Shown one piece after another: positions 354-30,524 of a DNA stretch of 45,661 bases; position 1 is the stretch's first letter; each line of letters begins with the position of its first letter. A program made the position numbers and the translations under genes. The notes beneath the pieces are model-generated. The model ran no database searches, had not been told where the DNA came from, and saw only the letters and a list, made by a program, of their open reading frames with translations. The stretch is taken from the NCBI GenBank assembly GCA_001179505.1, contig CDMY01000596.1, positions 1 through 45,661 of the forward strand, in the 5' to 3' direction. Source of the stretch: Vitrella brassicaformis CCMP3155 (taxonomy: Eukaryota > Protista > Chromerida).

Positions 354-2054
354 ATGGCCTTGCTTTCGGATCTGTCTGCTGCTGACGCTGATGCTCCGCA
401 TTCGAATGCTGCCCTTCTGGCCTGCAGCTGCCTCGCTGTCCTCGTTTTATCCATCTGGGCAGCCTGCCTGCTGCTTGTCAGGGGCAAGGGATGCCGCCGC
501 AGCTTCATGCACGCAGCCGAGCGAGTGCTGTTGGTCTTCGCACATCCCGACGACGAGGTCATGTTCTTCACGCCAACACTGGCGGAGATCCAGCGCCTCA
601 ATCAAGGGAGGAGGAGGCGCAACGAAAGCGAGATGGAGGTGCACTGGCTGTGCCTATCCACTGGTGGGTCGTTACCACGCAAGAGGTGGAAAATGCCCCT
701 CACCGTGTGATCGTGTTGTTGTGTGTGCGTGCGTCGTTCAGGCAACTATGATGGCTTGGGAGGTGTGCGTTCCAACGAGCTGATGCGATCGGCTGAGTCC
801 TTCGCCGTACCGGCAGACCGTGTGTGCATCGTCGATGAGGCGGACCTGCAAGATGGATGGGCGGAGTGGCCGACAGAGGCCACCTCTAATGCCGTATTCC
901 AGACACTGATCAAAGTGCGGCCCGACACGGTGAGGCTTCGTGTGTGACGTGACAGACAGCGGAGCCATGGGTGTGTGTTCTTCCGGCACGGCTCGCTCTT
1001 TTTATGTGAATGTGCAGATTCTGACGTTCGATGAGTGGGGCGTGTCGGGGCATCCTAATCATCGGGCCGTCGGCAAGGCCATCAAGTAAGCACAGCACAA
1101 GATACACGTGACTCTGCTGTGGAAGCTTCAAGGACTGCTGCTGCTGCTATTGGTGTGCAGGTCGCTTTATGAGCGGATGAACCCCTCGGCGAGGCTGGGT
1201 GTCTACCGACTGATCTCTACGCCCCTCGTCAGGAAGTACATCGGTATGGATACCAATGCGATACGCGGAATGCGTGTTGCCCAATGCAGTGCACCACAAT
1301 CTGCCCTCCTGTGCGCCCTTTCCTGTTTGTTTGCATGATCAGGCATGCTTGACGTGCCGCTTTCGTGGTGTCTCGACAGGCGTGTGTGCCCGTCCCCCCG
1401 CCCCTCCCCTCCCTCTCCGTCGTCGCTGCTCGCCCCCCCTGGATCCTTGTCTAGTCGTCCGAAGCTCGAGTTGAGGGCATTGGATGCCCTCCAGCTGTCG
1501 CCCCTGCGCGCCTTGCGGGGCATGATGAACCACAGGTCGCAGCTTGTGTGGTATCGCTACCTATTCGTCTTTTTCTCCAGGTGACACTCAACGAAACGAA
1601 CGAACGAACGAACGATTGTTGATGCGTCCCTTCGTGTGTGGGTCGATCGCATCGATCGCACAGGTATGTGTACATCAACACGTACGAGAGGCTCCTCCCT
1701 CCCCCGCCGGCCAAGCCCCCCGCGCTGCCCACGCTCGACATTCTAGCGCAGCACCTCATCTCAACTGAGATCGATGACACTGATGAGCTGATGGACCCCA
1801 GCCCGTCGACCTCTTCACCATTCAGCCATCCGGAACGCGCCTCGTCACCCGCGACCGACTGCCAGCAGACAAGTGGAGCAGCAGCAGGCTGTCCGCCACC
1901 CCGGCGGCATCGAAGGCGGCAGCAGAAGGGCAGCATGGCAGCCGGGGTGTCGGATGAAGCGGCGAGCGACTCCGTGGAGGGCGACAACGGCAGGGCGGCA
2001 TTGCGTCCGGGGGGAGAGGGGGAGGCGTGTGTTGCGGAGGAAGACACTGGATGA
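354..2054 (+). CDS. PIGL: N-acetylglucosaminyl-phosphatidylinositol de-N-acetylase (GPI biosynthesis, PIG-L family), 6 exons
   Basis: Exons 354-663, 742-929, 1018-1085, 1161-1243, 1343-1580 and 1664-2054 join in frame at GT-AG sites. N-terminal TM anchor, then LLVFAHPDDEVMFF, CLSTGNYDGLG..R..EL, ILTFDEWGVSGHPNH, LISTPLVRKYIG and HRSQLVWYRYLFVFFSRYVYIN, all PIG-L family motifs. Confidence 0.93.
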
Positions 2055-2381
2055 GGATAGAGACAGACAGATGTCTTCTGTGTGTGATATATGAGACATT
2101 GGCATTTTATGGCTGGCTCTTTCGATTCAGTGTGCCGCACGTGCACAGAGAGGAGGGGCTTCTGATTGTGCGGTGGTGAACGCTTTTGTTTGTTGCATAT
2201 ATCGGACCTGACCGACCTTTTCTTTCCCTTTTCGATTACACACACGACATGTGAAACGATTGCGGAAGGCATGAGAAATTGACACGCTTCACAAACACAC
2301 ATGGGCACGAACCAGCACATTCACAAGATCCGTCTCCGCCCACGCGGCACAATCCTCACGCGCCCACAGACAGACGCACCC

Positions 2382-5127
2382 TCACGACCGTCGCTTCGCA
2401 GTCGACTTCAACCGATCGAAAAAATCTTGCATCTCAGCATCATTATCGGCTGCTGCCCCTCCGTCATCATCCCCGCCACCCAGCGATGCCGCAGCAGCAG
2501 CTGCTGCTGCTGCTGCTGGTCCGGGTGCTCGCCCCTGTGTCATCCCCCCTCTGCCCCGGCCTCTCCCGGTGAACATGCCCCTGGGTGGCGCAAAGAATGG
2601 CGGCACCGACCGAGGTGCTGGTGGGTTGTGGATGGCCTGGGGAGGTGGTACGATGGGCCGCCAGGGGGCTGCAGATGAGGGGGCGGGGTGGTACGGGTTG
2701 GGGGGGTTCTGGTCGAGGAAGATGGAGTCAGCGGGGGTCATCATCTCGTCACCGTCCCTCTGGTAGCAGAGAAGGAGCAGATGGATTGGGCGGCTGTGTG
2801 TTGGTTTGGAAATTGCTGACCTGGGGTGCGTGTGTGCGTGCGAAGGCCGTGGGTGGTCCGTCCACTGATGAGTCGAGCGGTCTCTTGGTGCGCGACCCGC
2901 CACTTGACGATGACGAGAGCCCCTGAGCTGCGATGACCTGCACCATGGATGGGCAACACACACGACACGGCCGGCCATGAGAGGGTTGATGTGGGGAGCC
3001 GTGTGTGGTGCCATCCATCCATCCACCCTGTGTGCCATACATTTAGGCTGCGTAGTGAGATGATGAACAGTTTTCCCGTGGGTCCCTCCTCGAAGGCCGT
3101 CACCTGACACAGAGACAGACAGACAGACACGTTTATGGATGAATGAGACGGGGAGTGATCGACACGGACGTCGTTGAGTATGAGCGTCGCCCCGTGCTGC
3201 AGGGTGTGTGCAGACGCCTGCCACGCCTGAGACAAGGCAGGCAGCAAAGGACAAGGAGGAATAATCGACCGTGTGTGCAAATGGTTCGGGGTTTTCCTGT
3301 ACGGTGGCCGGCTTACGTCGCGCTGCACGACGGCAGGCATCTGCCCCGTTGGGTCCTGAGAACAAGGATACAGAGCATTGCAGACAGGCCAGTGGCGTGG
3401 GGTGCGCACAGGTTCTGTGTGTCTTACTGCGACGAGTATGACGGTCCCATCGTCAGAGGACTTGATGACGCTCTTGAGCAGAACCAACATCTGCGGCACC
3501 TACACACACACCACACACGCACAGCACAGGCGAGGAGGTGCATGCCATGCGATCCTCTCTCTATACGGCCGTGGTGGCGTCACCTTCATGAAAGGTTTGT
3601 TGGACCGCAGGATGGACGCAATGTTGTTCTTAGCCACGAAACTATGGACACAGCAACCACTCCACACAAACCTGGGTGGGTGCGGTGCGTGTGAGGGTCA
3701 TGGGTACCTACCTATTGGCGCTTGCAGGGTCGCTTTGCGATGGGTAGTAGGTCTTGCCGACGTGAAAATCTAACCACACACAACAGAGAGGCAAATGGGC
3801 CATCGCGGGGCTGGGCGTGTTGTGTTGTGTTGGGTGTGGTTTGCCTACCGTCATGAACAGGCAGCCCGAGGGCCTCCAGGGCCTCCATCCACGATGCAAA
3901 GTCACCCAAGAAATCTGACAAACGAAAGAAGGATTGAGATTGACACATGACGCCTTTGTCTTCGCAGCGCAGCATATTGATCACATACATGGTTTTCCGG
4001 CGTCAGCGTCACCATCGTCGTCATCCTCCTCCTCATCGTCGCCCCCACCGTCACCATCCTCACTAAGCAGACAAGAACACACACAGCGGCATGACTGACT
4101 GTAGGTGCAGTGCAGTGCACCTGGCCAGCCAGCCTACTTACTGCTTCATTCTCTTCATCTTGATGGCCCTCCGCCTGCCCATCTGCAGCCCCGCCGGACC
4201 AGGCAGCCGCATCGGACCCCCATCGCCCTCGTCGCCCACCTCATCCAACATGAAAGCATCCATGCCATCATCACCACCACCACCACGGCCTCCCCCCTCC
4301 CTCTCCCCCCCTCTGCTGTGCGATGCCTGTGATGAGGCCGCCAGTGACGACTGCACGACGCCCGAGAACGGCTTCTTGACTACCGTGCCGGGCTTCATGA
4401 GCAGGCCGCCAGCCAGTCTCTTGAGTGGCCGGGGATGGTTTGCCGTGAGCTGCGATGGCATGAAGGGCGCGGGAGGGGGAGGGGGAGGGGGAGGGGGCAT
4501 GGAGGCCTGTGACGGAGGCGGGCGGAAGGGACGATTGTTGCTATTGTATGCGGCGCTGGCCTGTGGCGCCCTCTGGCTCTGCCAGAAGGGGGGCTGCTCC
4601 GATGCGGCGACGGGGTTGTCCGATGCGATGTCGTCCCAGGCCTGGCTGCTGCCGTCGTCGCGCCCAGATTGGTATGCTCTTCCGTTGCTCGGCTGGGAAG
4701 GTCCCGTCGGATGACGAAACTGCGCACCGCCCAGCGGTCGAAGCCCTGCAGGTCGCTGGGACGCCCGGAATGGAGGCTGCTGCGATGGAGGGAAGGGCGG
4801 CTGAGAGGGTAGGTGGTCCTGCGATGCCAGACCACCACTCTGCGACAAGAACGCGCCCTGCAGACCACCTCCGAACAGCCGCCTGCCGCCACCTTGTCCG
4901 CCTGCCGCTGCTGCCGCTGCTGGTGCTGCTGCTTCGCCTCCACTGTTTGACTGGATCAGCGGTCGGTTTGGCCCAGTCGGCTGCTGGAACGCTCGTCTGA
5001 AGCCCAGGGCTCCTCTGTTGAATCCGAACCGCCGGGCGGGCGCGGCCGGCTGTCGAAACGAAGGGTCCGGTGCAGCTGAAGCAGAGCCGACGCCCTCATC
5101 TTGCGAACTGCACAGAAACGCGTCCAT
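2382..5127 (-). CDS. HROB: HROB/MCM8IP (C17orf53)-like OB-fold protein, multi-exon
   Basis: First ATG at 5127 (MDAFLCSSQDEG), followed by a long low-complexity N-terminus. Spliced core (~3910-2930): DFASWMEALEALGL...FVAKNNIASILRSNKPFMKMLVLLKSVIKSSDDGTVILVADPTGQMPAVVQRD...LQHGATLILNDVTAF...LFIISLRSLNVI. This matches the HROB pattern as I recall it (DF..W, IKS, DPTG.M, L..G..L.L). The 3' end (stop 2382-2384) is less certain. Confidence 0.72.
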
Positions 5128-5189
5128 CTTGATTTCAATGTGTTTACACAGAAAGCTCGCAATCGAAGGGAAGCACACGGCAGAGCGGA
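5128..5189. promoter_or_regulatory. Very short divergent intergenic segment between HROB-like and NFU1 start codons
   Basis: Minus-strand ATG at 5127 and plus-strand ATG at 5190 (alternative 5211). Promoter function is inferred. Confidence 0.45.
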
Positions 5190-6802
5190 ATGCAGCGGAC
5201 CGTTCGTTCGATGCTTCGGCAGCATGGCTGTCGGAGGTTTGTTTCAGATCACGGCGCAGCGGACGCGCGGAGAGCACTTCGGCATCTCCTCGAGCAGGGT
5301 AGGTGCTTCGCGAGCGTCACGCTGCAGACGATGGACACGCCGAACCCACAGGTGGATATGTGAATAGGGAGGGAGGACAATGAAAGAATGCTGTTGACTG
5401 TCATGTCTGTCTGTCTGTCTATCCGTTCGTGTGTCAGGCGAAGATGTTTGAGGCTCGTGAGTCGTCGCGTGCGCAGGCCGTGACGATATTGCCCGACGAG
5501 GTCAAGGAGAACAGCTTCTTCTACCCATCGCAGAGTGGGAACACCACATGAGCACGACACGGCGCTGTTCGCCGCACTGTGTATCCGTCTGTCGTGCGCA
5601 TCGCATCTGTGTGTGTCGTCAGAGAACCCCCCATCGCCCCTTGCTGCGTCACTCCTGCAGGTCAGTTCTAACCAGAGAGCAGTCGAGAAACACACGAGGC
5701 GGACTGATGTGTGCCATGTGTTGGTCAGATCCCTGGTGTGAAGAGTGTGTTGCTGGGCCACAGCTACGTGTCGGTGACCAAGGAGGACACGTCTGCGTGG
5801 GACGAGCTGGAGCATCACCTCAGGGAGATGCTCAAGAGCCACCTCGACCAAGAGAAGACCATCATCGAAACAGAAGGTGCCTGCGAACGGCCCATCACAT
5901 AATCCACGTAGCTTCGTTCTGGGTGCAGTGTGTCCTTGCTGCATGTGTGTGGTAGGTATGGGTGAGCCCGCTGCGGCCAAGGAGGAAAGCCCCAGAGGTG
6001 AGGGCGAAGACGATGAAGACGGAGAGGACGACGACGACGACGAAGACGTCGTGTCGAAAGTAAAGGTACGTCAAATCAATCCGCCGACCCGAGTGCCGTC
6101 TGCATGACACTGTGTTTCAGTTAGTCACGGTCGCTTGGCTACCTGTGTTGCCTTCTTCATGTGTGTCTGTCAGAGCCTGATTGATATCCGTGTGCGGCCC
6201 TTCGTCCAGTCGGATGGTACGGTACCAACACACACACGCCCATGGGGGGGATGCAATCGGTGACACGGGGTGAGGTGATCGGGTGGGGTGCTGTGTTTGT
6301 CTCCCGTGCGGTGCGGTGGGTGCGTCAGGCGGCGATGTGGAGTTCATTCGATTCGACGACGCCAACGGGGTAAGTCAGTCAGTCATGTGGCACTCACTTG
6401 TCTTGTTGCATGTGATGTGTGATGCGATCGATGTATGTATGTATTGGATGGCATGCAATGCATTGATTGCATCATGGCCATGCATGGTGTTGTGTGCACT
6501 GCAGGTCGTGTGGGTGCACATGAAGGGTTCGTGCGAGGGCTGCCCCAGCTCAACCATCACCGTCAAACGCGGAATGGCCGAAATGCTCAAGTACTTCATC
6601 CCTGAGGTAGGGAGGGAGGTGTGGCACACACGACCACTCGTAAAAATGTGCTGTCTGTCTGTCTGTCTGTATCTACCTGCCGCCCTCCCCTCCCCTCCCT
6701 GCCCCCTCCCTGCCTGTGGACCGATTGACTGCCAAGGTTGAGGATGTGCGGACGTGTGACGAGAATGGCGACCCCTTGGACGAGGGCGAGGATGACGCGT
6801 GA
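5190..6802 (+). CDS. NFU1: Mitochondrial NFU1-type iron-sulfur cluster scaffold/carrier (NifU C-terminal domain), multi-exon
   Basis: Arg-rich presequence-like N-terminus (MQRTVRSMLRQHGCRR...), then TLQTMDTPNP, SPLAASLLQIPGVKSVLLG, acidic linker, LIDIRVRPFVQSDGGDVEF, MKGSCEGCPSSTITVKRG..MLKYFIPEV with the CxxC motif. Stop TGA at 6800-6802. Confidence 0.93.
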
Positions 6803-8969
6803 ATCAATCAATGGATGGCGGCCCCCGGCAGACCTGCATACATGTGCTAACTAGCTTGTGAGAGCTTGTTGGTTGGTTGATGTGTGTGTCAATGTTGTGG
6901 CTGCTGGTTCCCGGGCCGCTGTGCACTGCAGGAAGGCACAATCAGACACAAACGATTGCTGCCCCCCTAAGTTGTGCGGCGTCGTGGGAAGCCACAGCCA
7001 CAGCACCACACACCATGTGATGTGTGCTGCGTCGAGTTTTTGACCGACCCACAGACAGAGATGCGGGGACAGCCGATGTTCTAGCGCTCACCTCGACGCC
7101 ATGGCCTTTTTCTTGGCCGGTGGTGTGGGTGTGGAGGGATCTTGTACAGAGAGGCAGGCAGACAGACAGCGTGGCTGGGTTAGATTGACCGAGTGCGTGT
7201 GTGTGAGTGTCTGTCTGTCTGTCTGTCTGTCTGTGGCGATGTAGGGTGGTGGTGCGTGGTGTACAGCTCAGAAGGTAAGAGGTATACGATGGTAGGTTGG
7301 GTTGACCAACTCTCAGCAAAGCATGCATCTACACGAGTCCATTGGTTGAGAGTCCAAGAGAGAAACACTTAGCTGTCGATTGGAGGTCGCGCACCAGCAC
7401 GGAGCGTTATCCCGACAGGCAGACAGACACGCCACGACATGCAATGCTATGCTATGGTACGGTGGGTGACTCATCTTCAATTGGCATGACTGACACAAAT
7501 GCATTCATTCTTGCAGACACGAGAGAGCGAGAAACCAATCAGCACAGCCAATTAGGGCGGCCCACACCAACACGTACCTTTGTACCGACCGACATGGGGA
7601 GACAGAGAGAGAGGCGCGAGAGAGACAGAAAGACAGAGAGCGAAAAAGGCGAGAGAGCGTGTGTGTATGGGTCATCATTCAGGAGGCGGGCGCGTGCATA
7701 GAAACATATCACACACACACAGACACATCCAGTATACTCACCGAGACACACAGACATACATACATCTGTCTGTGTGTCTTTGGGTACGATCGATAGCAAT
7801 GGTAAGGCAGGCAGGCAGGCCGGTAAGGGTGACGCAGACACCTTTCATGTCTTGTACACGCACACCCCACCACACCAGGCCACGCCACACGCCCAGTAGT
7901 GCCCTCCCCTCGCTGGCTGACCAACATATGCACATAAAATGCCGCCCATCAATCCATACCGATGTCTGCCGGGTGCATGGCCATTCGGAATTCTCCATCC
8001 ATCCATCCAGCACACCCCCGCCAGCCGACAAATGAATTGCCGTGCGTACGCCCACCGTAAACACATCGTGCTGTCATCATATCCCTCACGTCCCACATGC
8101 AATTAGATATCGCCCATTCCCGACTATTTGTTGTCGCGTCCCGGTCTGCACATTCTCAACGTCTCTCGCTATCATCCATCGCCGTCTACCTCCCCATGCA
8201 TATGGGAGACCTGACCAAGAGAGACTGGCCGCTTGAAGCCAGCAGCCCCTCTCCATTGGCCCGGTGCCGCGATATGCGTGGCGAGGCGTCATGGGACAAA
8301 TGACTCGCAGAGAGCCCACAGAGACGCTTAGACACGCTCACCCACTCCTTGGCTCGGTTGCCACATGGCACTCACTGATCAGGGGGGATACAGGTGATGG
8401 ATAAAAAACCATGCGCCCGTCCGGGCAGGCAGGCTGGCAGATGAGAGCCCCAAAGGCGAGGCGAGCAGCGCCACAGCATAGAGTAAGTCTACATGCCACG
8501 TGTGTATGTCATGGCGCTGCCTGCCTCTTTGCCTCCCTCCGTATGCCCCTCTGTCTGTCTGTGTTGGTCTGTGTTGCATCCCTTGCAGACAGACAGATGG
8601 CTTCCTTCGTGTGTGTCCCTCCCTGCTTTGCCACGGTCTGTCAGATCGCCCCGGTGTCATTGCCACGGGCGCGAGCACTCACTCACTCACTCACTAGCAC
8701 ACAACACGAGTTATGCAAGAAAGCCATCCAGGCAGCTACAAGAAGCCACCACGACCACCACCAGCAGCAGCAGCAGCGTCAGCGTATCTACAGGCAGGCA
8801 GGCAGGCCACAGCCAAAAAGCCATCAAAAACAAGACGACCCCCCGTCAAGTCAATTCGCCACCCGTTTGTCTGTCTATGCACAACAAATGAACACTCCCC
8901 TCCCCATCCCTCCCCATCCCATCAGCTGCTATGCCATGTGGTGAGCACATGCAATGGAATGGATGGATG

Positions 8970-10845
8970 CTATCTGCCCGTCCCCCTGTCCGACAGGCTC
9001 TGTCTGTGCCTCGCTATCGCCGAAGCGTGGGGCGTCGGCGTCATCGCCTCGCCACCACCACCACCACCGACCTCATCCCCGCCACTTCCACGTGCACCCC
9101 GGCCCCCGCCCCCGTCACCGTCACCGTCCATGGCCGATAGCTGCAGGGTGGTCTCGATTGTCCTCCGCTCCTCCTCCTCCCTCTCGGCCGTCTCCATCGA
9201 CAGCTGCAGCGCGTCCTGGAGGATGCGGTCGCTGTCGCTGTCAGATGTGGAGTCGCCCAGGCCCTGCCACTCCGATTGCCGTGGCGGAATGTGCAGACAG
9301 TCGATTGGCTGTGCCCCGGCGCTGCGTGACCGCCTTCTCCTCTGCTGATGGTGTGGCTGCTGGTTGTGGTGCTGCTGGTGGCCGTTGGATGGCTCGCGCG
9401 TCCGTCTGTGTGGGTGGGGGTGGGGGTCGCTCGACTGTGACCGTCTTGGCCTCCCCCTCTGGTGGTCGGTGTTACAGCGGCCGGTGGTCAGCGTCACTCT
9501 CGACCGCTCGTGTGGGGGGACGGGGGGCGGCAGCGGCACCACAATCGGCTCCAGAGCCCTCTCGGGCCGTGTGTGTCGCCTGTCGCGCCTCATGTGCTGC
9601 AGCTGCTGCTGGTGCAGTGCGAGAGACGCACGGATGGCCACGCGGAGCTCCTCCTCTTCACGCCTGCGCGCCGCCTCGCTCCGTGAGTTGCGCCGGGAGT
9701 TGCGGGCAGACCCACCGGCCGATGATGCGGACGTGCCTGACCGGCCGCCGCCTCTGCTCGTCCGCCGCTGTGTGTCGCCACCCACGGCCGACCGAGCCGC
9801 TGACGCACGGACCTTCTTGGGTCTGTGAAGAATGGCAACACAGAGGTGTGTGTTGCGTGTGTGCGTGTCTTGGCTTCTTCTTCGGCTGCTCACCTCAGGC
9901 AGCAGAATAGGAAAGATGAGAGGCAGGAGAGGAGGAGCAAGCCAATGGCGCCCAGCAGGCCGACCAGCACTGAGGCTGACCATAGCAGGCACAGACACAC
10001 AGATAGCAGCAGGAGGCATGAGAATGACGGCGCCTTATGTGTGTGTGTGTGAAGGCATACAGGGTATGGCGTCTCTGATGGGCTTGGGCACCCAGCTGAT
10101 GATCTTCTCCACCAAACCCAGCTCTGGACATTGGCCACAAACACATCAGACGTATGCCAGAGGCTCCACACATCTGATGTGCACGTGTGTGTGTGTCTGC
10201 CCGACCTTCCTCCTCCGTCAGCCCTTCCAGCTTGTAATCCTCTGTGCGAACAAACCACACACGAACACGCAAAAGACGAGACCGTGAGACCCCCTCAGCC
10301 CTTCTGTGTGCCCCACCCTCTCTCTGTGCCCTCACTCACCAATGTGTGCCACCTCGGCATAGTCACCAAAGTTGCCCTGCCTGAGTGAGCTGCTGGGGTT
10401 GCGCAGCTCCTGCTGCAGCACCACTATGGCCTCGGCCGCACTCGGCTCCGTCTGCCTGAGCGTCTTGTCCTTGGAGGGCACCACCCTGAAGTGGATCTTG
10501 AGGGGCGTGCTGTCCGTGTCGACGCTGATGTCCTTGATGCGGCCGTGGGAGATGCCCAGGGCGCGGGCGACGGACGCGTGGAAGAGCTCCTGGAAGGCCT
10601 CGATGGACCCCAGCTTGGACTTGATCTTCTCGACGTCCATCAGCACTGACATGGTGGCCTGACGGGCGGGCAGGGGAAGGAAAGAAACAATGGAGACGTG
10701 TGAGTGTTTGTTGTGTATGAAGTTGCTGCTGTTGCTTCAGTGTGGGCGTATTACCACGACGATGGGCTGCCCCTGCACACAAGTGCGGCCGTCGCCCACG
10801 TAGCCCTTGATGCAGGCGCAGAAGTAACCACCCTGATCACACACG

Positions 10846-10882
<37 letters not shown>

Positions 10883-13800
10883 CGCTATCCATACGTGTCG
10901 CGTGTCTCATCCACCCACTCATCCACAAAACCTGTGTTGTGTGTACCTGTGTGTTGATGCACTTGGTGTTCTGCCCGCACGCCGCCAGGCCGGATGAGCA
11001 CTCATCGACGTCCTCGCAGAGGCCCCCGTTGACCACATAGCCCTCCGCACACCCGCAGTCATATCCCCCCTCCGTGTTGACGCACGACACACCAGAAGGG
11101 CACAGCTCGCTCGGCTGGTCGCTCGCGCGGTCCGCCTCGCACTCATCGATGTCGCGACACACCTCAAAGCCATCGCCCTCATAGCCCGCGGGGCACTCGC
11201 AGGTGTAAGACCCCTCCGTGTTGGTGCACACGGCCTTCTCGTGACACACGCCTTCGGTGCCTTTCCTCTCGCCCACCGAGAGCACCATGGCGATGCTGCC
11301 GTTGCCGCTGCCTGGCGGACGGGATGGCCGGCCGGAGCCTGACGACCACCCGCGGCACTCGTTGACATCCTGGCAGTGCTGCCCGTCGCCCTTGAAGCCC
11401 GCGGGGCAGCTGCATGTGAAGGGCGGCCCCTCGCTGCCGGCGACCGGGCGGCAGTCGGCGTTGGGGTGGCATGTGTCGCATGAGTCCACCTCGGTGGACG
11501 ACTGCAGGGACAGGTTCGTGCCGTCGATGCCCGACGTGCCGAAGCAATCGCCGCCGTCAAAGTCATACCTGCACACACAGACAAAGAAAGGGACAGAATA
11601 ATGAGACAAGGGTAGGGTGCTTTCTCGTCCATGGTGCTGTCTGTGTCAGTCAGGTCAGGGCCTGCCCGACTCACTTGGTGGTGTTGCAGACTTGGTCGCA
11701 CACATCGTCCCCGATCCACTCCATCGAGCAGTGCGGCCCGTGGCTGTCATCGCTGTCGCCTGCCTCCCCGTCCTCACCCGATGAGGGCGACGGCGGCGTC
11801 CGCAGCTTCACCTCAGCCAGGTGCACCTGGTGCTTGTCAAACGCATCTTGAGCGAAGAAACCCAGGAAGGCCTTGGAAGGGAACACCCCCGAGGCGCGCA
11901 TGTCCTCGCTGGTGGCGGCCGCGGCCTCCTCCTTGCTGCGGAGCGGCACTGGGCGGATTGTAAGCTCGCCAACGGTGTCTGGCTCGCCCCACAGGAAGAG
12001 CTCCTCGCTCAGGTCAGGCTGCAGCAGAAAGTCGGTGGCATTGGTGGGCAGTGAGTAGAGAATGGGTCTTAGGATGCCGCCCTGCTGGAAGGAGAGCTCG
12101 CCGAGCACGTCGTTCTCGCTGACGAACAGTGTCTTGGTGGTCTGGCCGTTGGTGCGGTCGTAGGTGAGCTCCAAGAAGGCCTCCAGGAAGTGACCGTCGC
12201 GGAGGTCACGGGGAGTGCGGTAGTACTTGAAGGGAATGCTCACGTACTCCTTCTGCACACCCACACGCACAGACGACACACACACGGTCAGCCCAGCACA
12301 TCGATAAGTCACTCGTGCGGTCCGTCTGTGTGACCTTGGTGTTGGAGGCCTCTCTCTGCTTCTCGGTGGCGAACAGCCATGAGCGGTGTACGAGTTGGTC
12401 CTGGCCGTCGACAGCAGGTGGAGCGGGTCTGGGGTCCTTGCTGTCCTGTGCCAGGTGGTGCTGGCTCATCTGCCACACCTCGCCGCGCCACCAGCCCGTC
12501 AGCTCGGTGCCGCGGCCACCCGCCAGCTCACTCTGGAGGGTCTCGCCCACACTCGCCACAAACACGCGGTCGCTGCCCGCCTTCATCAGCGGACCTGGTG
12601 GGTCAAGGAATGATTCGAATCAACAGGACGGGCAGTGTGTATCGTTCGCCTCTTCTGCTCGTCTGGTCTGGTCACCTTTGAATACGAGAGAGAAGACGAC
12701 AGTGGAAGGCACTCGTGCGTGTAAGTAGTAGATATGTTGGGAGGCGTCGTACATGAGCCGCCCGTCGTGGACGCCGAAGTCCTGATCCCGGTCGACGAGG
12801 GTGGCCGTGGTATCCTGTGTGACGGAGTTGGATGGCCCCGCCCAGCAGACGGAGCCCTCCTCGCTGTTGACGACGCTCTTGACGAACGACGAGTAGGTGG
12901 TGCGGATCTGGCGGAAGAACTCCTGCTGCCAGATGTAACCCACCACGGGCTGGTCACACGTCACCTAAACACCACACACCCATGCATACACAACGAAGTC
13001 ACTTCCCCTCCTCTCCCCTCTGTCTGTCTTTGTCTCACTCTCACCTGTAGGTTCGAGTCCGGGAAGAATATGTTGACTCCCGTGAATCGCGCGTAGGGCT
13101 CCTTATCGACCTCGAGCAGCACCATCTGTGAGTAGAACCGCCGCACCTCCACCACCTGCCGCTGCAGCGTCTCGTCAACCTGGTTCAGCTGCAGAGCCGA
13201 CCCGAGCTTGTCCAGGAAGTCGCCCAGGTCGATGCAGCCACACAAGCCGATCATACGACAGCCGGGGAGGGAGTAGGCCTGGCTGGCGGCCTTCTGGACC
13301 AGCACGCTGACGCCCTTGCCGCCGCATGAGTAGAGCGACTCGAGAAGGGTCTCAAACTGCTTCTTGAAGATGTTGAAGTCGCGGATGGCGATCAGCGACA
13401 TGGTCAACGGGTGGCTGCGCACATGGCTCTGTGTAGAGCAAATAAGGGACAGGGAGAGGCGGGATGACGACACGACATGCATCCATTCTCGCAGACTTGT
13501 GTGCCACCCATCGCATCTCACCTCATAGCCTTGCAGGAGGCTCTCGCCGTATTCGTAAGCCGTGGCAGCCCGCAGACCGTCAGCCGCACGAACAGTAGGG
13601 CGCAGGTACCTGACAACACCCACACATACGCACACACAAGCCGTGCCTGCCTGTCTGTCTGTCTGTCTGTGGGCGGTTTCTTCGGTTCTCCCCCCTACGT
13701 ACCTCCAGTTCCATCCGTGTCCTGGTTCGTTCTCCTCGCTGGCCATGAAGTAGTGCGTGAAGGGCCCCAGGCTCTCTATCACATTGTACGACGACATCAG

Positions 13801-15574
13801 ACACGCATCGAAGCCCAGAAAGGCAAACTTCAAGGGCAGCGCCCCGTTGCCCTGCCCCGTCTGCTGCGCCTTGTGCACTTCGGTCGCCGTCAGGCCGTCA
13901 CGCACGCCCTTCACAATCGACTGCAGCGACATGGACCGCCCGTCGCGGTTGCCGTCGTCCTCGCCGAACCCCGCCCACGCCGAGCCATGGTTCCTGCGGG
14001 GCGTGAGAAGGGGTGCGTGTGGGTGTTGTCCAGTTGGTGTGTGTGTGTGCGTGTCACGTACCACAGCGTGAGTGCGAAGTGTTCAGCGGGGAAGTCGTCG
14101 ATGGATCGTGTGATGAAGCTCGACAGCACGTCGGGGTCGTTCATGTCAATCTGATTGACCAGGACCACATACACACGCACACACACACACACACACGCAC
14201 AGGGCACATCACATGAATGCGATACACGTGCACGAACAAGAAGCACTTGGTTTCCCTTGAGGTCTCACCTCTCCATGGTCGCGCAGCAGGAGCCATTCGA
14301 ACTGGTTGCTCTCGCCGTTCCACACCATCAGCAGCTCATAGGCCCGCTCAAACTGCAGACGGATGTCGCGCTGCGGGGTCGAGTCTGTCAGGCCGGACAA
14401 GGGGCAGGCGTGGACGCGGCCGATGGGGCTGTTGGTGTGCCCCTGGGCACGGTCGATGAGCACCACCAATGTCAGCTGGCCCTCGAACAGCGGCCGGCGC
14501 ATCTCCTTGAGGTCCCATAGTGCCGACATCTCGAGGTTGTTGTCTGCGTGCATGAACACGAGGTGCGTCCAGTGGGACTTTTTGTAGCTGCCGCCCTTGG
14601 TCCGCTTCATGAGGGTGCCGCACACGCCACTCTCGGGCACACTCTCCTTGACCGAAGGCGGCTGCTCGTCCTCGGTGCTGCTCGCCACAAGTGTCGCCTC
14701 CTCCTCCCCTCGCTCTGTCGCGTCACTCTCTTGTTGCTGCTGGTCCTCCTCTGGCTGTTGTGTCTGTTGCTCGACTCCATCCTCCCTCTCTCCGTCTTGC
14801 TGCCCCCCATCATCTGGCGGCGCCCCCTGGCTGTTGTTGGCATCGCACCTGCCGGTGCCGTCGGTGTAGACAGGAACGAACACCCGTCCCTCGTCGCAGC
14901 TGAAACAGTTGTCGTCGGCCTTTGGGCAGCAGTCCTTTCTGCAGGTCATGCAGGTGGGGTGGCAGTGGCCGGGCATCTCCTCCTCGCTCGTCTTGGGCGT
15001 GCAGATGCCAGTGCCGTCCGTGTACTGGATGGCCAGAATGGACCCCTCGGGACACGACAGGCAGTTGTCGTACTTGCCCCTGCAGCAGTCGGCCCTGCAC
15101 GTATCGCATGACTCGTGGCAGTGGCCGGGCTTCTTGGCGTTGGAGGTCGACGGGGTGGGCTCGTGGTCAGACGCACTCGACAGCTGCTCGTCGCAATGGT
15201 CCCAGTAGCCCAGGAAGTTGCTTTGGCAACGACACGACCCCTTGCCGCAGTGAAACTCGTCCACGTAGCACCTGACAGAGCAAAGGGACGCACAAGTCAA
15301 TTAGCCACCGATCTGCGTTGCTGTCCGGTGTCTGCCTGGGTGTCGGTACCAACCATGGCTTCTCCTCGAGCAGCGACGGCGCGCATGGGTTGCCGAACAA
15401 ACGCGGAGCACAGGGACACCCTGACACGCACACCGAGCATCTCTCTGTGCCCTTGTGCACCATGCAGTGCGCTCACGCCTTCTCACCTGAGTTGCTCTCG
15501 AGGGCTGCGATCTCTCGCAGCAGGACCAGCACAGCGGTGAGGGCCACCAAGCGCCACGACCACCGAGGCGCCAT
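8970..15574 (-). CDS. Type-I membrane protein: signal peptide, kringle-like module, 2 furin-like Cys repeats, clostripain-family (C11) cysteine peptidase, LNR, 4 EGF/EGF-Ca modules, SEA-like domain, TM helix, UIM-bearing tail
   Basis: ATG at 15574 (MAPRWSWRLVALTAVLVLLREIAA). C11 motifs: WTHLVFMHADNNLE, IDMNDPDVLSSFI..FPAEHFALTLWNHGSAW (His at 13987-13989), FLGFDACLMS (Cys at 13801-13803), ASEENEPGHGW. LNR: CSMEWIGDDVCDQVCN..FDGGDC. EGF-Ca signatures DVNEC, DIDEC, DVDEC. TM exon 9975-9894 splices in frame into the 9827-8970 exon. Exons join in frame at GT-AG sites; some donor positions are approximate. Confidence 0.85.
10838..10882. repeat. Compound (CA)n(GA)n microsatellite in an intron; representative of many intronic (GT)n, (CTGT)n, (CCAT)n and (GACG)n tracts
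   Basis: Read directly from the sequence. Confidence 0.9.
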
Positions 15575-15769
15575 CGCTGGCACCTTTGATGATGAGGCAG
15601 GGCGCCCTCCCGCTATCGTCTCCAACTATCCAGCGCAGCGAGATCAGGATTCAGAACAGGACCGCGGCTGACGGCAGGGCATTGCCGAAAATATCAGGCT
15701 GGAAGTCCCGGCAATACAGCTGGCAAAACACGCGACTTCACCCAATACTCAAAAGCTCGCCATCGTTCG

Positions 15770-16004: not shown

Positions 16005-19000
16005 ATGATGAGGAGTGCGGAGCGCCCCCGCACGCCTCATCCCACCAAACGGGCGCGGCCAACCAAGCCCCATGCGCCCACCTCACACCCGGTGACCACC
16101 AACCAGCCCGCCTCCCAGCCTACACCTCTTGTCAAGAAAGCTGTGTTCAGTCACATTCAGTCATTCAACTGGTTCTTACAATCAGCACTGCCCCGCATCG
16201 TGGCCGAGCTGCCGGCGTTCGAGGTCGACCCGCATGAGGACTTCGACTGGCGCTCGTCGTTCCCGAGACCAACGCCACCTAAGATCTGTAAGCCAGGGGG
16301 AAGAAAGAAAGAAACACAGCCTAAACCAGAGCATCATTCCATCTGCTGCATCTCTGTGTGGTGCTGTCCGTCCTTCCAGCCCTCAAGTTCTGGCTTCGGA
16401 GCGTCGAGGTGGGGCGCCCGACTCGGTTCGAAGACACCATGATGGACCAGACTCTGTTCCCCAACCACTGCCGGGAGGCTCGTGTGCACTACGCCGCGCC
16501 CCTGACCTTCAAGTGGGCATACCAGTGGTCTGACGAGGATGAGCCGACGGAGGTGGTCGATCCTGCGGGTCAGCTGCCGATCATGGTGCAGTCGATCAAG
16601 TGCAACCTGCACGGGCTGACGAGCGAGCAGATGGTGGCCCACAAGGAGGACGAGAACGACCCCGGCGGCTACTTCATCATCAACGGCAACGAGCGGCTCA
16701 TCCGGTTCGTCATCAAGCAGCGCAGCAACTACCCCATGCTGCTGCGCAAACACGCCCCCTTCAAGAGACTCGGGAAGCTCAAGTGCATGATCACCATGGC
16801 CTGCCTGCGCCAGGACGGCAGCCAGCTCGTCAACCACATCTACTCATTCCTCGACGGCACGGCCATCTTCCAGACTCTCATCAAGCGGCGGTCGGTGTAC
16901 CTGCCCTTCTATTTGCTGCTGCTGGCGACCAACCCACTGCCGGCCGGCGACCAGTGCATATGGGAGCGGCTCATCGACGGCGATGTGACCAACATGCAGC
17001 TGCTCTTCCTGGTGCAGACCCTCATGGACGATGCCAAGACCAGATTCTCAACACTCTGGCCGTCGCTCAGCAGGGACAAGGTCAGGTCACAACACACACG
17101 ACAGAGATGGATGAGATGGCTGAACCAATGGGTATTGTGTGATGTGTGGGCTGGTCCTGGCTGTCAGGCGCGTCAGCTGCTGGGTGACCTGATATGGGAC
17201 CACATTCGCGAGCTCGTGTCGCCGTGGTGCAGCTACCGCGAGTGCAGCACGCTGTTTCTGCGCAAGTATGTGCTGCCGCACGTGGACTCGGACGCCGCCA
17301 AGTTCGACATGCTGTGCTTCATGTGGAAGAAGATGATCAGCCGCGCACACCTCAAGGGCAAACACAAAACAACGGTAGGTATCATAACAAGGGAGGGGCA
17401 AAGGCAGGCAGCCGAGAGGGGCGGGAGAGTACCACGGATGTGTGTGGGGGATTTGTGTGTTTGTGATGCATGTGCGTGTGGTCAGTATGAGAACGTGGAC
17501 GCCTTTGCCTTCCAGGAGGTCATCACCCCCGGACAGATCTTCGGAGCCGTGTTCAGGGTACGCAGCCCACCCACCACCTCCTCAATCGCCTCCCTCTTCC
17601 TCTCCCGTCATGGATCCATCCTCCATGCATTCCGTGATATGTCAGGACGTGTGTGAGCAGAACTTGATGAGGATGCGCGGATCCTTCTACGGCGAGGCGA
17701 AGCAGGCGCGCAACAACAATGCCGACCCCGTGGCGCACCTCAAGTCGGCCAAGGTGTTCGAGAGGCGTGCACACGGGGCGTCGCTGGAGATCAGCTCACG
17801 CATGATCAACTTCGTCGCCACGGGCAACATCAAGACAGAGCACCTCGACCTACTGCAGGTGTGTATGTTATATGTGAGGGTGGGGAGGGAGGGAGGGAGG
17901 TGCGCTAAAGGAAAATGTCCGTGCGTGTCTGCTTGTGTGTGCTTGTGTCCTGGCTGTGCTGTGCTGTGTCGTGTTGTTTTCTTGTGTGCAGACGGCTGGT
18001 TGGTCCATCTCGGCTGAACGCATCAACTGGTACCGATTCCTGGCGCACTTCCGTGTGGTCCAGCGCGGCAGCAGATTCATGGGCTCACGAAACACCATGG
18101 TAACACATAAGCTGTCCATATGGCGTCGAGAACCTCACCCTCTTTTGTTTTGCAGCCTCGCAAGTTGCGCCCCGAGACGTGGGGCTTCCTGTGTCCCGTC
18201 CACACACCCGACGGCAGCCCATGCGGTCTTCTCCTCCACCTCACACAAGACGCATATGTGGTGAGGACATGGCACACCACAACACGCGCACACAGACCCA
18301 CATTGCCCCTCTGCAATCGGTCTGTCTGTCTGTCTGTCTGTGTGTCAGACGAGCGCCCCCGTGGGGGCCTCCACTTTCGACCGCGTGGCGAAGGTGCTGA
18401 CACGTCTTGGGTGCCTGGTGACATCTGCCAACGAGGCGCCGCCCTGGGGGCTGCCTGGATCGTGGGCGCACATTATCCTGGACGGCCGCATCATCGGCCG
18501 CGTCCAGATGGAGCTGCTGGAGCGGGTCTCTCTGTCGCTGAGAATGTGGAAGATACTCGGCTTCGCTGGGCTGCCCGAACACATGGAGGTCGTCGCTATC
18601 GGCCAAAATTGCGGGTGGGTGGACAGGACGATGGTCGGCAAGGGTGTGTGTGATGGGAGGCGGAGGGAGGGGTGGCATGTGCATGTGTCGGGCCCCCCTG
18701 TTGGTCGTGTGCAGGTTCTACTATCCTGGTTTGTATCTGTTCACGACCCCTGGCCGTGTGGTGCGGCCCGTCAGGAACATCAGAGCATGGCGGTCAGTCA
18801 GCCAACACACCAGCACCACATTCACCACACACCACTCATGCCTTCCTCCTTCTTGTTTCTTCTACCTACTGTTCAGGCCCGAGTGGATCGGTTCCCTGGA
18901 GCAGGGGTGGCTCAACATCGCCGTCTTCGAGACGGACATCTTCGACTTCTCCGTCGACAACCTCTGCCTGGACATGCGCCAGATGAAGCGTCTCAAGGAC

Positions 19001-29907: not shown

Positions 29908-30207
29908 NNNNNNNNNNNNNNNNNNNNNNNNNNNNNNNNNNNNNNNNNNNNNNNNNNNNNNNNNNNNNNNNNNNNNNNNNNNNNNNNNNNNNNNNNNNNN
30001 NNNNNNNNNNNNNNNNNNNNNNNNNNNNNNNNNNNNNNNNNNNNNNNNNNNNNNNNNNNNNNNNNNNNNNNNNNNNNNNNNNNNNNNNNNNNNNNNNNNN
30101 NNNNNNNNNNNNNNNNNNNNNNNNNNNNNNNNNNNNNNNNNNNNNNNNNNNNNNNNNNNNNNNNNNNNNNNNNNNNNNNNNNNNNNNNNNNNNNNNNNNN
30201 NNNNNNN
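29908..30207. other. Assembly gap (300 N) flanked by poly-G runs
   Basis: N run 29908-30207, with a G run at 29889-29906 and another at 30208-30216. Confidence 0.99.
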
Positions 30208-30524
30208 GGGGGGGGGCACAGTTGCGCTTTTGTGTTGGGCGGGCGTCATGTAAGCAGGTGGGTTCATTGGCTCTTTCTTCATCTTGCTCGCTCTGTCTGG
30301 GGCCGGGCCAGCCACTTTTTGTCTGACAAAGGAAGAGACACAACCAACCGAGCGAGACATTTCGTTTGCTGCACCATCCATCCATCCATCCATTTGACTC
30401 CATCAGTCAGTGCAACAAATCGGCGCGAACACATCAGTACTGGACCAGGCCAGCAGGCCGCCAATCAACAAACAGCACGAGAAACCATGGCCCACACACT
30501 GGCCTCCAAGGACGTCAGGCAGGG

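Follow-up and report, generated by a model that had tools for sequence, protein, structure and literature searches.

The gene described here lies on the minus strand at positions 8970 to 15574 of contig CDMY01000596.1 from the alga Vitrella brassicaformis CCMP3155 (assembly GCA_001179505.1); "the window" refers throughout to that whole contig of 45,661 nucleotides, and all coordinates are positions in it. The product of this gene is probably a cysteine endopeptidase of family C11 (clan CD), anchored in the membrane with type I topology and belonging to the same family as cgd6_670 of Cryptosporidium parvum and its Toxoplasma gondii counterpart CBDP3. Behind a signal peptide, the predicted protease faces the lumen or the cell exterior, carried on a stalk of LNR, EGF and SEA-like modules above a single transmembrane (TM) helix. 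The gene is a new, free-living member of a known chromerid/apicomplexan family and its architecture is not itself new; because that architecture is already in databases, the discovery is a modest one. Evidence for the assignment comes from the catalytic domain, from a set of collinear relatives and from a spliced transcript that unites the peptidase with the membrane anchor.

The peptidase domain and its relatives

All Pfam, fold and structure analyses were run on single exons, on the stretch 13045-13992, which reads through two in-frame introns without a stop, and on relatives used as proxies. On this footing, exon 5 alone scores 49 bits against Pfam Peptidase_C11 (PF03415; cut-off 25.8), the Atlas feature score to C11 clusters is 0.94, and a profile built from the family matches clostripain 9cip (E = 5e-13) and 6mzo (E = 1.4e-12). 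Exon 5 compared singly with PDB sequences gave no match, and the family profile was needed for these alignments. In the catalytic-core profile, the window motifs LWNHGSAW and GFDACLM align to "LWSHGtAW" and "FDACyM" of 6n9j, 4yec/3uws and 6mzo, with His418 ("NHG") and Cys480 ("FDAC") sitting at the positions of PmC11 His133 and Cys179. Together with Asp478, these residues are invariant in 13 family members drawn from five lineages, among chromerids, Cryptosporidium, coccidia and Cardiosporidium, and so are the flanking motifs LWNHGSAW, GFDACLM and SE.NEPGHGWN. Such invariance of His, Asp, Cys and their surroundings, from chromerids to Cryptosporidium and coccidia, points to a functional active site maintained by selection.

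The predicted Arg/Lys specificity hinges on Asp478, the invariant S1-pocket residue standing two residues N-terminal of Cys480, whose PmC11 equivalent is Asp177. In PNT1 of Trypanosoma brucei, the equivalent S1 Asp is Asp134 (PMC4850289). A second point of comparison with the solved enzymes is the loop of 8-9 residues found between HG..W and FGQD in 6n9j and 6mzo, which shows as a gap in the alignments and is missing throughout the eukaryotic family. In 6mzo this loop holds the basic residue at which PmC11-type enzymes are cut to become active. Arg432 and Arg435 were considered as equivalents of PmC11 Lys147 and rejected, since the cleavage loop is absent and both arginines are further downstream and not conserved. 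Autocleavage in this loop is not a strict requirement of C11 peptidases, so the window protein's membership stands; judged from the alignments, the missing PmC11-type activation loop appears to be a new observation for the family.

An exhaustive HMMER search with the catalytic core returned long proteins as its first ten matches (1145-2977 residues; best identity 55%). The top matches come from Neospora, Besnoitia, Cystoisospora, Eimeria, Cyclospora, Cryptosporidium, Cardiosporidium, Chromera (Cvel_15101) and two transcriptome assemblies, and the Pfam content of these long relatives is C11 with EGF and, in some, LNR. The likeness runs along most of the protein: a relative labelled P0001 gives one BLAST alignment over window residues 64-1418 (36% identity), the Cardiosporidium member gives one over residues 289-1410 (31% identity), and the proteins of Neospora, Besnoitia, Cryptosporidium and Chromera match segment by segment in the same order. 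In a profile search, about 20 members score at least 554 bits, and the scores then fall sharply, to 195 bits, where ordinary C11 proteins begin; a word search with P0001 residues 350-1120 found bacterial C11 proteins only, and the family surfaced with the profile. In a quick maximum-likelihood tree of C11 domains, 24 family rows fall on one side of a branch with SH-aLRT support of 98. The clade comprises about 23 collinear relatives and spans Chromera, Cryptosporidium, coccidia and Cardiosporidium. P0001 itself is a protein of 1642 residues with the same architecture, encoded at 493-5421 of a Logan contig of 5956 nucleotides (SRR28036162); it could be a paralogue of the Vitrella protein or an orthologue from a related alga.

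These relatives decide a question raised by a preliminary description of the window, whose author knew of no characterised protein with this architecture. A claim to novelty does not survive the collinear proteins of Chromera, many Cryptosporidium species, coccidia and Cardiosporidium, and the architecture proves largely to be widespread and already described. C. parvum cgd6_670 is annotated with the same architecture in UniProt/CryptoDB, including a TM helix at 1528-1550, and has CBDP3 (TGME49_269930) as its Toxoplasma counterpart (PMC13095730). Grewal et al. (2016; PMC4850289) placed C11 proteins of Chromerida, Coccidia and Chlorophyta with bacterial ones, in a tree that includes a Vitrella MEROPS entry, Cvel_15101, F0VJH3 and B6ABJ5, and proposed lateral transfer of C11. 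Woo et al. (2015) do not mention the architecture.

C11 proteins outside the family also carry metazoan-style extracellular modules. P0040 combines the peptidase with TSP1, Kre9 and fn3, and P0229 with EGF and laminin-EGF (both from ENA/JGI assemblies); CUB accompanies it in P0138 (Volvox) and P0210 (an EukProt entry), both eukaryotic. From these four module sets, C11 seems to have acquired extracellular partners on more than one occasion.

A single spliced gene and its modules

Assembled contigs from four public runs were placed on 9650-15640. The run labelled X6 provides a single spliced contig of 7137 nucleotides (word depth 160) that spans this entire interval and skips 13 segments whose ends are CT..AC in plus-strand sequence, corresponding to GT..AG on the minus strand. 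Its junctions are also present in X7, which derives from a different sample and study, and in X1, from a third study; the X8 contigs are unspliced genomic pieces. The other 3 of the 16 introns fall on masked CA/GT repeats, and their positions were worked out from the X6 contig's own coordinates. Microsatellite tracts (CA/GT or CT/GA) stand inside three introns, at 10834-10893, 13614-13679 and 14157-14208, and their masking as repeats hid three splice junctions in read placement. Once splice joints had been shifted within their stated ambiguity, all 16 introns (66-118 nucleotides) read GT..AG on the minus strand, and the 17 joined exons form a single open reading frame (ORF) of 1729 residues, from an ATG at 15574-15572 to a stop at 8972-8970. 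The X6 contig begins near 15760, which gives a 5' untranslated region of at least 186 nucleotides and a transcript 5' end at or beyond 15760. Its length also implies about 1.7 kb transcribed past the stop (window about 7209-8970, minus strand), in the form of a long 3' untranslated region or an overlap with a neighbouring transcript.

The N-terminus of the product resembles a signal peptide, and relatives likewise show hydrophobic N-termini. A Cys/Pro-rich stretch (residues 30-80, including the small second exon) is followed by two tandem repeats with eight Cys each, which share the pattern PGHCH..C..CR.DCC....DNC..C..G......Y.DGTG.C and are identical to each other at 26 of 46 residues, and then by an acidic Q/E-rich linker (residues 198-265). 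The repeats are 49-64% identical to modules N-terminal of C11 in Neospora, Besnoitia, Cystoisospora, Eimeria and Cyclospora, and the family alignment places such modules in relatives P0167 and P0168 as well. They have no Pfam match, and Atlas scores of at most 0.77 gave weak furin-like/VSP leads only. That the Vitrella protein and coccidia have these repeats in common appears to be a modest new point.

The region between the peptidase and the LNR was modelled through a proxy, residues 721-1110 of P0001, which are 32-36% identical to the three window exons concerned. The AF2 model (pLDDT 75.5, pTM 0.73) consists of three helices and then beta-sandwich subdomains. Searched against AFDB clusters, it matches (E = 4.7e-10 to 1e-4) the stretch directly after C11 in bacterial proteins whose names are "Peptidase C11 clostripain" or "Clostripain", in a green-algal C11 protein and in unnamed proteins. 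Against the PDB, Foldseek gave nothing meaningful for this domain (TM ~0.1) and VIA gave generic Ig/FnIII-like matches only (Z 6-7). Many of the nearest C11 matches outside the family are 620-700 residues long, which fits C11 plus such a beta domain; these lengths and the position of the AFDB matches indicate that the recruited catalytic unit was C11 together with its beta domain. As far as the model goes, a beta domain that travels with bacterial C11, and would be of bacterial origin, looks new.

The single LNR, once spliced, reads C....W.GD..CD..CN......DGGDC, with four Cys against the canonical six. Its first half scores 13.9-14.5 bits against a Pfam PF00066 cut-off of 21.2, a low value because the intron at 11569-11674 splits the module and half of it was scored; in Cardiosporidium and Neospora the aligned module clears the cut-off, at 29.4 and 22.4 bits respectively. 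Pfam EGF_CA, cEGF and EGF_3 match the four EGF modules that follow, with E-values of 1e-19 to 1e-22. EGF2-4 are of the calcium-binding type, starting DVNEC, DIDEC and DVDEC, and contain the Asn-hydroxylation consensus C.N....Y/F.C; EGF4 is split by the intron at 10833-10946. EGF2 carries a Gly/Ser/Pro-rich insertion of 35-40 residues between its first Cys (DVNEC) and the next (11250-11370, minus strand; residues ~1119-1153), which is coding and not an intron, as the spliced contig is continuous across it.

Next to the membrane stands an alpha/beta domain that, folded from the window exon with 18 relatives, reaches a pLDDT of 92.9 with a beta-alpha-beta-beta-alpha-beta (ferredoxin-like) order. 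VIA matches it to CELSR1, TROP2, SorCS2, IA-2, PCDH15 MAD12 and CDH23 MAD28, and to the SEA domains of TMPRSS6, Gpr126, dystroglycan and MUC16 SEA5, at Z 5.0-8.2; the aligner rates the range of 5-8 as common, so that "SEA-like" denotes a fold class and nothing narrower. Foldseek matches are marginal (E ~0.05), and Pfam SEA (PF01390) has no match in the window protein. The G/SVVV autocleavage motif was not found in its turn, which reads DTDSTPLKIHF. Several relatives have Gly-Ser (EGS-I/V) at the beta2-beta3 turn, the site of SEA autocleavage, where the window protein has DTDSTPL. The membrane-adjacent stalk encoded by two mini-exons is conserved across the family; the TM helix occupies the same position in all full-length relatives, and all members have type I topology.

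On the far side of the membrane, the tail contains three UIM-like cores (EEEELRVAIRASL, DRILQDALQLSME and RRTIETTLQLSA). The core pattern e-e-e-e-h-x-x-A-x-x-x-S, which was defined after the motifs had been seen, occurs three times in the tail and not once in the ectodomain of 1419 residues, with an expectation of ~0.003-0.05 per shuffled tail. Pfam UIM (PF02809) scores 10.1-11.5 bits here, below its cut-off of 21, and apart from this sub-threshold hit the tail matches no Pfam domain at E up to 10. A textbook UIM stands in the tail of P0001, the nearest relative (EEQQIRLAMELSLEE; 13.9 bits against the same cut-off of 21). Among 11 Cryptosporidium members checked, tails are 1-62 residues long and none has a UIM-like motif; some coccidian tails are long (63-202 residues), none with a convincing UIM-like copy. 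A UIM-like tail common to the Vitrella protein and P0001 looks new, with the UIM assignment itself serving as a lead only.

Most of what the preliminary description had read from the DNA is borne out by these results (Table 1). It had proposed one spliced ORF, and the contigs of X6, X7 and X1 with their 16 GT-AG introns yield exactly the same coordinates, 8970-15574, the three studies agreeing on the junctions over 9650-15640. Its union of C11 and EGF/TM exons in one gene holds in one contig, in one frame and in collinear relatives. The C11 domain with both catalytic residues is there (49 bits in Pfam, with His418 and Cys480 intact and invariant in relatives), as are one LNR and four EGF modules in the order it gave, recognised in the spliced sequence, by Pfam for the EGFs and in relatives for the LNR. 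The AF2 confidence and the VIA matches to SEA and MAD domains agree with its SEA-like juxtamembrane alpha/beta domain, and the single TM helix with a tail of ~285 residues corresponds to one helix by hydropathy and 284 residues. The preliminary description says nothing of the 8-Cys repeats, the beta domain that separates C11 from the LNR or the UIM-like motifs, and does not reveal if the small exon 15420-15354 formed part of its model.

Table 1. Positions of the coding region, domains and motifs in the window (minus strand throughout)
Feature	Position	Strand	Basis
Entire coding sequence (17 exons; 1729 codons and the stop)	8970..15574	-	Spliced contigs, GT-AG check, ORF assembly
Exon 1: start codon and signal-peptide-like N-terminus (MAPRWSWRLVALTAVLVLL...), residues 1-25	15487..15574	-	ORF assembly
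Exon 2: small Cys/Pro-rich exon, residues 30-52	15354..15420	-	Joints 15269>15352 and 15419>15486, X6 and X7
Two tandem 46-residue repeats, 8 Cys each, residues 100-197	14836..15129	-	Spliced sequence
C11 (clostripain-type) peptidase, residues 283-670, exons 3-7	13045..14580	-	Pfam PF03415, alignment to solved structures
Catalytic His418 ("NHG")	13989-13987	-	Spliced sequence
Asp478	13809-13807	-	Spliced sequence
Catalytic Cys480 ("FDAC")	13803-13801	-	Spliced sequence
C11-associated region, residues 671-1020, exons 8-10: three helices then beta-sandwich subdomains	11752..12964	-	AF2 model of P0001 stretch
Single four-Cys LNR (HCSMEWIGDDVCDQVCNTT / YDFDGGDCF), residues 1027-1055	11541..11733	-	Pfam, spliced sequence, family alignment
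Four EGF modules, residues 1076-1271	10779..11480	-	Pfam, spliced sequence, contig continuous over 10946-11566
SEA-like membrane-adjacent alpha/beta domain, residues 1280-1385, one exon	10341..10658	-	AF2, VIA
Conserved stalk, mini-exons 10241-10206 and 10123-10061 (..EDYKLEGL.. and ..ISWVPKPIRDAIP)	10061..10241	-	Joints in X1, X6, X7
Single TM helix, residues 1420-1445 (SVLVGLLGAIGLLLLSCLSSFLFCCL)	9896..9973	-	Hydropathy
Cytoplasmic tail, 284 residues, rich in R, S, G, Q	8973..9822	-	Spliced sequence
Three UIM-like motifs	9618-9665, 9189-9239, 9123-9176	-	Motif pattern

The window is GC-rich (~60%) and its introns are short; GC falls to 0.457 at 30001-31000, against ~0.6 elsewhere. Just upstream of the gene, on the opposite strand, an ORF at 16358-17653 (plus strand) belongs, as an exon, to a gene for the second-largest RNA polymerase subunit (Pfam RNA_pol_Rpb2_1, E = 6e-26), which is arranged head-to-head with the protease gene.

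Possible roles of the proposed membrane-tethered peptidase

If the protein is the tethered peptidase that its domains suggest, the enzyme would cut after Arg/Lys, either in itself or in other proteins that are secreted, exposed at the surface or part of a wall, and its role would be that of a convertase or sheddase analogous in design to ADAMs, meprins and TMPRSS enzymes. The LNR and the calcium-binding EGF modules may form a rigid spacer or a docking unit, with the SEA-like domain acting as a membrane-proximal spacer. As the family has no cleavage loop, activation would have to take a route other than that of PmC11 and clostripain, or would not be needed. The preliminary description had suggested self-processing or shedding; any self-processing would have to do without the loop that PmC11-type enzymes cut in themselves. 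The UIM-like motifs in the tails of the window protein and P0001 probably link the protein to ubiquitin-dependent sorting or endocytosis. The C11 and beta-domain unit is probably bacterial, and would have been fused to eukaryotic extracellular modules before the chromerid/apicomplexan split.

Several points weigh against the peptidase assignment or parts of it. The Arg/Lys specificity we infer comes from a single conserved Asp, and the C11 fold of the window protein is read from sequence alignment and not from a model of its own. RNA support reaches down to 9650, so the last 680 nucleotides of the coding sequence depend on the open frame. To these are added the limits given above with the results concerned: a beta-domain model taken from a proxy at 32-36% identity with a mean pLDDT of 75, Z values for the SEA-like domain in a common range, and UIM-like motifs that fall below the Pfam cut-off and match a pattern drawn up after they were noticed.

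A more specific version of the peptidase reading would have the family process wall proteins, in the oocysts of Cryptosporidium and coccidia and in the sporangium or cyst walls of chromerids. Spatial proteomics places cgd6_670 in the "oocyst wall" cluster, the insoluble excysted fraction contains its peptides, and sporozoites and intracellular stages have little of its mRNA (PMC13095730, Table 2); an antibody against it gives a non-micronemal signal (PMC8710574). The family is found in wall-forming lineages, C11 proteins being reported absent, for want of evidence, from Plasmodium and Babesia (PMC4850289), and Vitrella too has oocyst-wall-protein domain arrays (PMC4501334). This support is correlative, however; Cardiosporidium also has a member, and the 284-residue tail with its sorting motifs would be more at home in a membrane protein that traffics than in a component of the wall. 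We consider a dedicated wall role possible but doubtful. A fuller evolutionary account goes further, and we regard it, taken as a whole, as unlikely: before chromerids and apicomplexans parted, a bacterial C11 and beta-domain unit would have been combined with LNR, EGF and SEA-like modules into an ancestral Arg/Lys convertase tethered to the membrane, the job of this enzyme would have been the maturing of durable cyst or oocyst wall proteins, and its surface level in free-living members would be set by ubiquitin sorting through the tail UIMs, later lost in parasites.

The three remaining explanations concern what kind of protein this is. In an adhesin or scaffold, the C11 domain would be a silent binding module on a surface protein like the EGF/TSP proteins of apicomplexans. 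The adhesive-type modules would suit such a role, and so would the remark in PMC13095730 that the role of CBDP3 in T. gondii "remains elusive" following its deletion (Wang et al. 2023), a remark that also counts against the peptidase assignment; but from chromerids to Cryptosporidium and coccidia no variation is seen in the catalytic His, Asp and Cys or in the motifs LWNHGSAW, GFDACLM and SE.NEPGHGWN, and we find a silent domain quite improbable. The preliminary description had also spoken of Notch-type modules, from which a receptor might be imagined in which a ligand bound to the EGFs exposes a site near the SEA-like domain, the ectodomain is shed and the tail is released by intramembrane proteolysis to signal. 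LNR, calcium-binding EGF and SEA-like domain are indeed Notch parts, but "Notch-type" says too much; several relatives have Gly-Ser at the SEA autocleavage turn, cgd6_670 is listed in silico as a possible rhomboid substrate (PMC13095730), and the TM helix contains small residues (GAIG). The arrangement of these parts speaks the other way. There is just one LNR, with four Cys, set apart from the SEA-like domain by four EGFs, so that no NRR-like clamp can form; the window protein reads DTDSTPL at the position of the relatives' Gly-Ser, and the Notch HD is not among the fold matches of its SEA-like domain; and no ANK, RAM or other known signalling domain is present in the tail, which is not conserved either and measures 1-62 residues in Cryptosporidium. 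Notch-like signalling is accordingly a very improbable function. Finally, a neighbouring secreted C11 gene and an EGF/TM gene might have been joined by read-through or misassembly, and one contig across two genes is no proof of one transcript. Such an artefact is scarcely credible here: all 16 junctions keep one frame open over 1729 codons, the junctions are identical across three studies, and some 20 relatives outside this genus share the collinear order from the Cys repeats through to the TM helix.

The membrane-tethered peptidase thus remains our preferred reading. The protease-on-stalk design is present in free-living photosynthetic relatives of Cryptosporidium, Toxoplasma and Eimeria, and so did not arise for parasitism. 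The Vitrella protein is a convenient model for the family, since it is compact, comes from a harmless alga and is free of the large low-complexity insertions of Neospora and Besnoitia. What the family does could bear on the formation of the oocyst wall, the transmission stage of several animal and human parasites.

Comparison with known systems

The closest comparison is with the cgd6_670/CBDP3 family itself. The window protein agrees with it in the order of signal peptide, C11, beta domain, single LNR, EGFs, SEA-like domain and TM helix, in belonging to one clade of the C11 tree and in having identical active-site motifs, and with the coccidian members it also has the 8-Cys repeats in common. 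Overall identity, in contrast, is 25-36%. Two EGFs are annotated in cgd6_670 against four in the window protein; Cryptosporidium members have short tails without the motif, unlike the long UIM-like tail found here; the Neospora and Besnoitia members, at ~2950-3000 residues, contain large low-complexity insertions that the window protein lacks; and some relatives carry Gly-Ser at the beta2-beta3 turn of the SEA-like domain, which it does not. Unlike cgd6_670 and CBDP3, it comes from a free-living alga and not from a parasite.

With the bacterial C11 structures (clostripain 9cip, PmC11 3uws/4yec, the "clostripain-related protein" 6n9j and the "inactive zymogen C11 protease" 6mzo), the window protein has in common the His-then-Cys dyad, the Asp two residues before the Cys, the "HG..W" and "FDAC.M" motifs and the PF03415 match. 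The bacterial proteins are soluble or lipoproteins of ~370-530 residues, without LNR, EGF, SEA-like domain or TM helix, and 6n9j and 6mzo have the PmC11-type autocleavage loop of 8-9 residues that the eukaryotic family lacks. Longer bacterial C11 proteins (R5LJ60, A0A521H411, A0A662ZBF1 and A0A1H4AST7) and the algal Monoraphidium protein A0A0D2MVH2, of ~620-1000 residues, come closer in having a beta domain of similar fold directly after C11; most of the bacterial ones, however, show no detectable sequence similarity beyond C11, and none of these proteins has the eukaryotic extracellular modules or such a membrane anchor. PNT1 of T. brucei is the one eukaryotic C11 enzyme with experimental work behind it, but it is intracellular, at the kinetoplast and not the surface (PMC4850289). 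It also falls in a separate, divergent C11 clade and lacks extracellular modules.

Notch resembles the window protein in combining LNR, calcium-binding EGF and a SEA-like juxtamembrane fold in a type I membrane protein. Its three tandem LNRs, with three disulfides each, pack on the HD, whereas the window protein has one LNR with two disulfides and places its EGFs between this LNR and the SEA-like domain. The tail has nothing like the RAM/ankyrin region of Notch, and the window protein carries its own protease; it is not a member of the Notch family.

In design, the nearest parallels are enzymes of other classes. ADAMs, meprins and TMPRSS6-type proteases hold a catalytic domain on an EGF, SEA or LNR stalk at the cell surface, where they act on surface or secreted proteins, and PAPP-A is a protease with LNR modules. 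The window protein follows the same principle of a tethered protease on a stalk, but ADAMs, meprins and TMPRSS6-type enzymes are of the metallo- or serine class and it is a clan CD cysteine peptidase, so that the likeness is one of convergence and not of homology.

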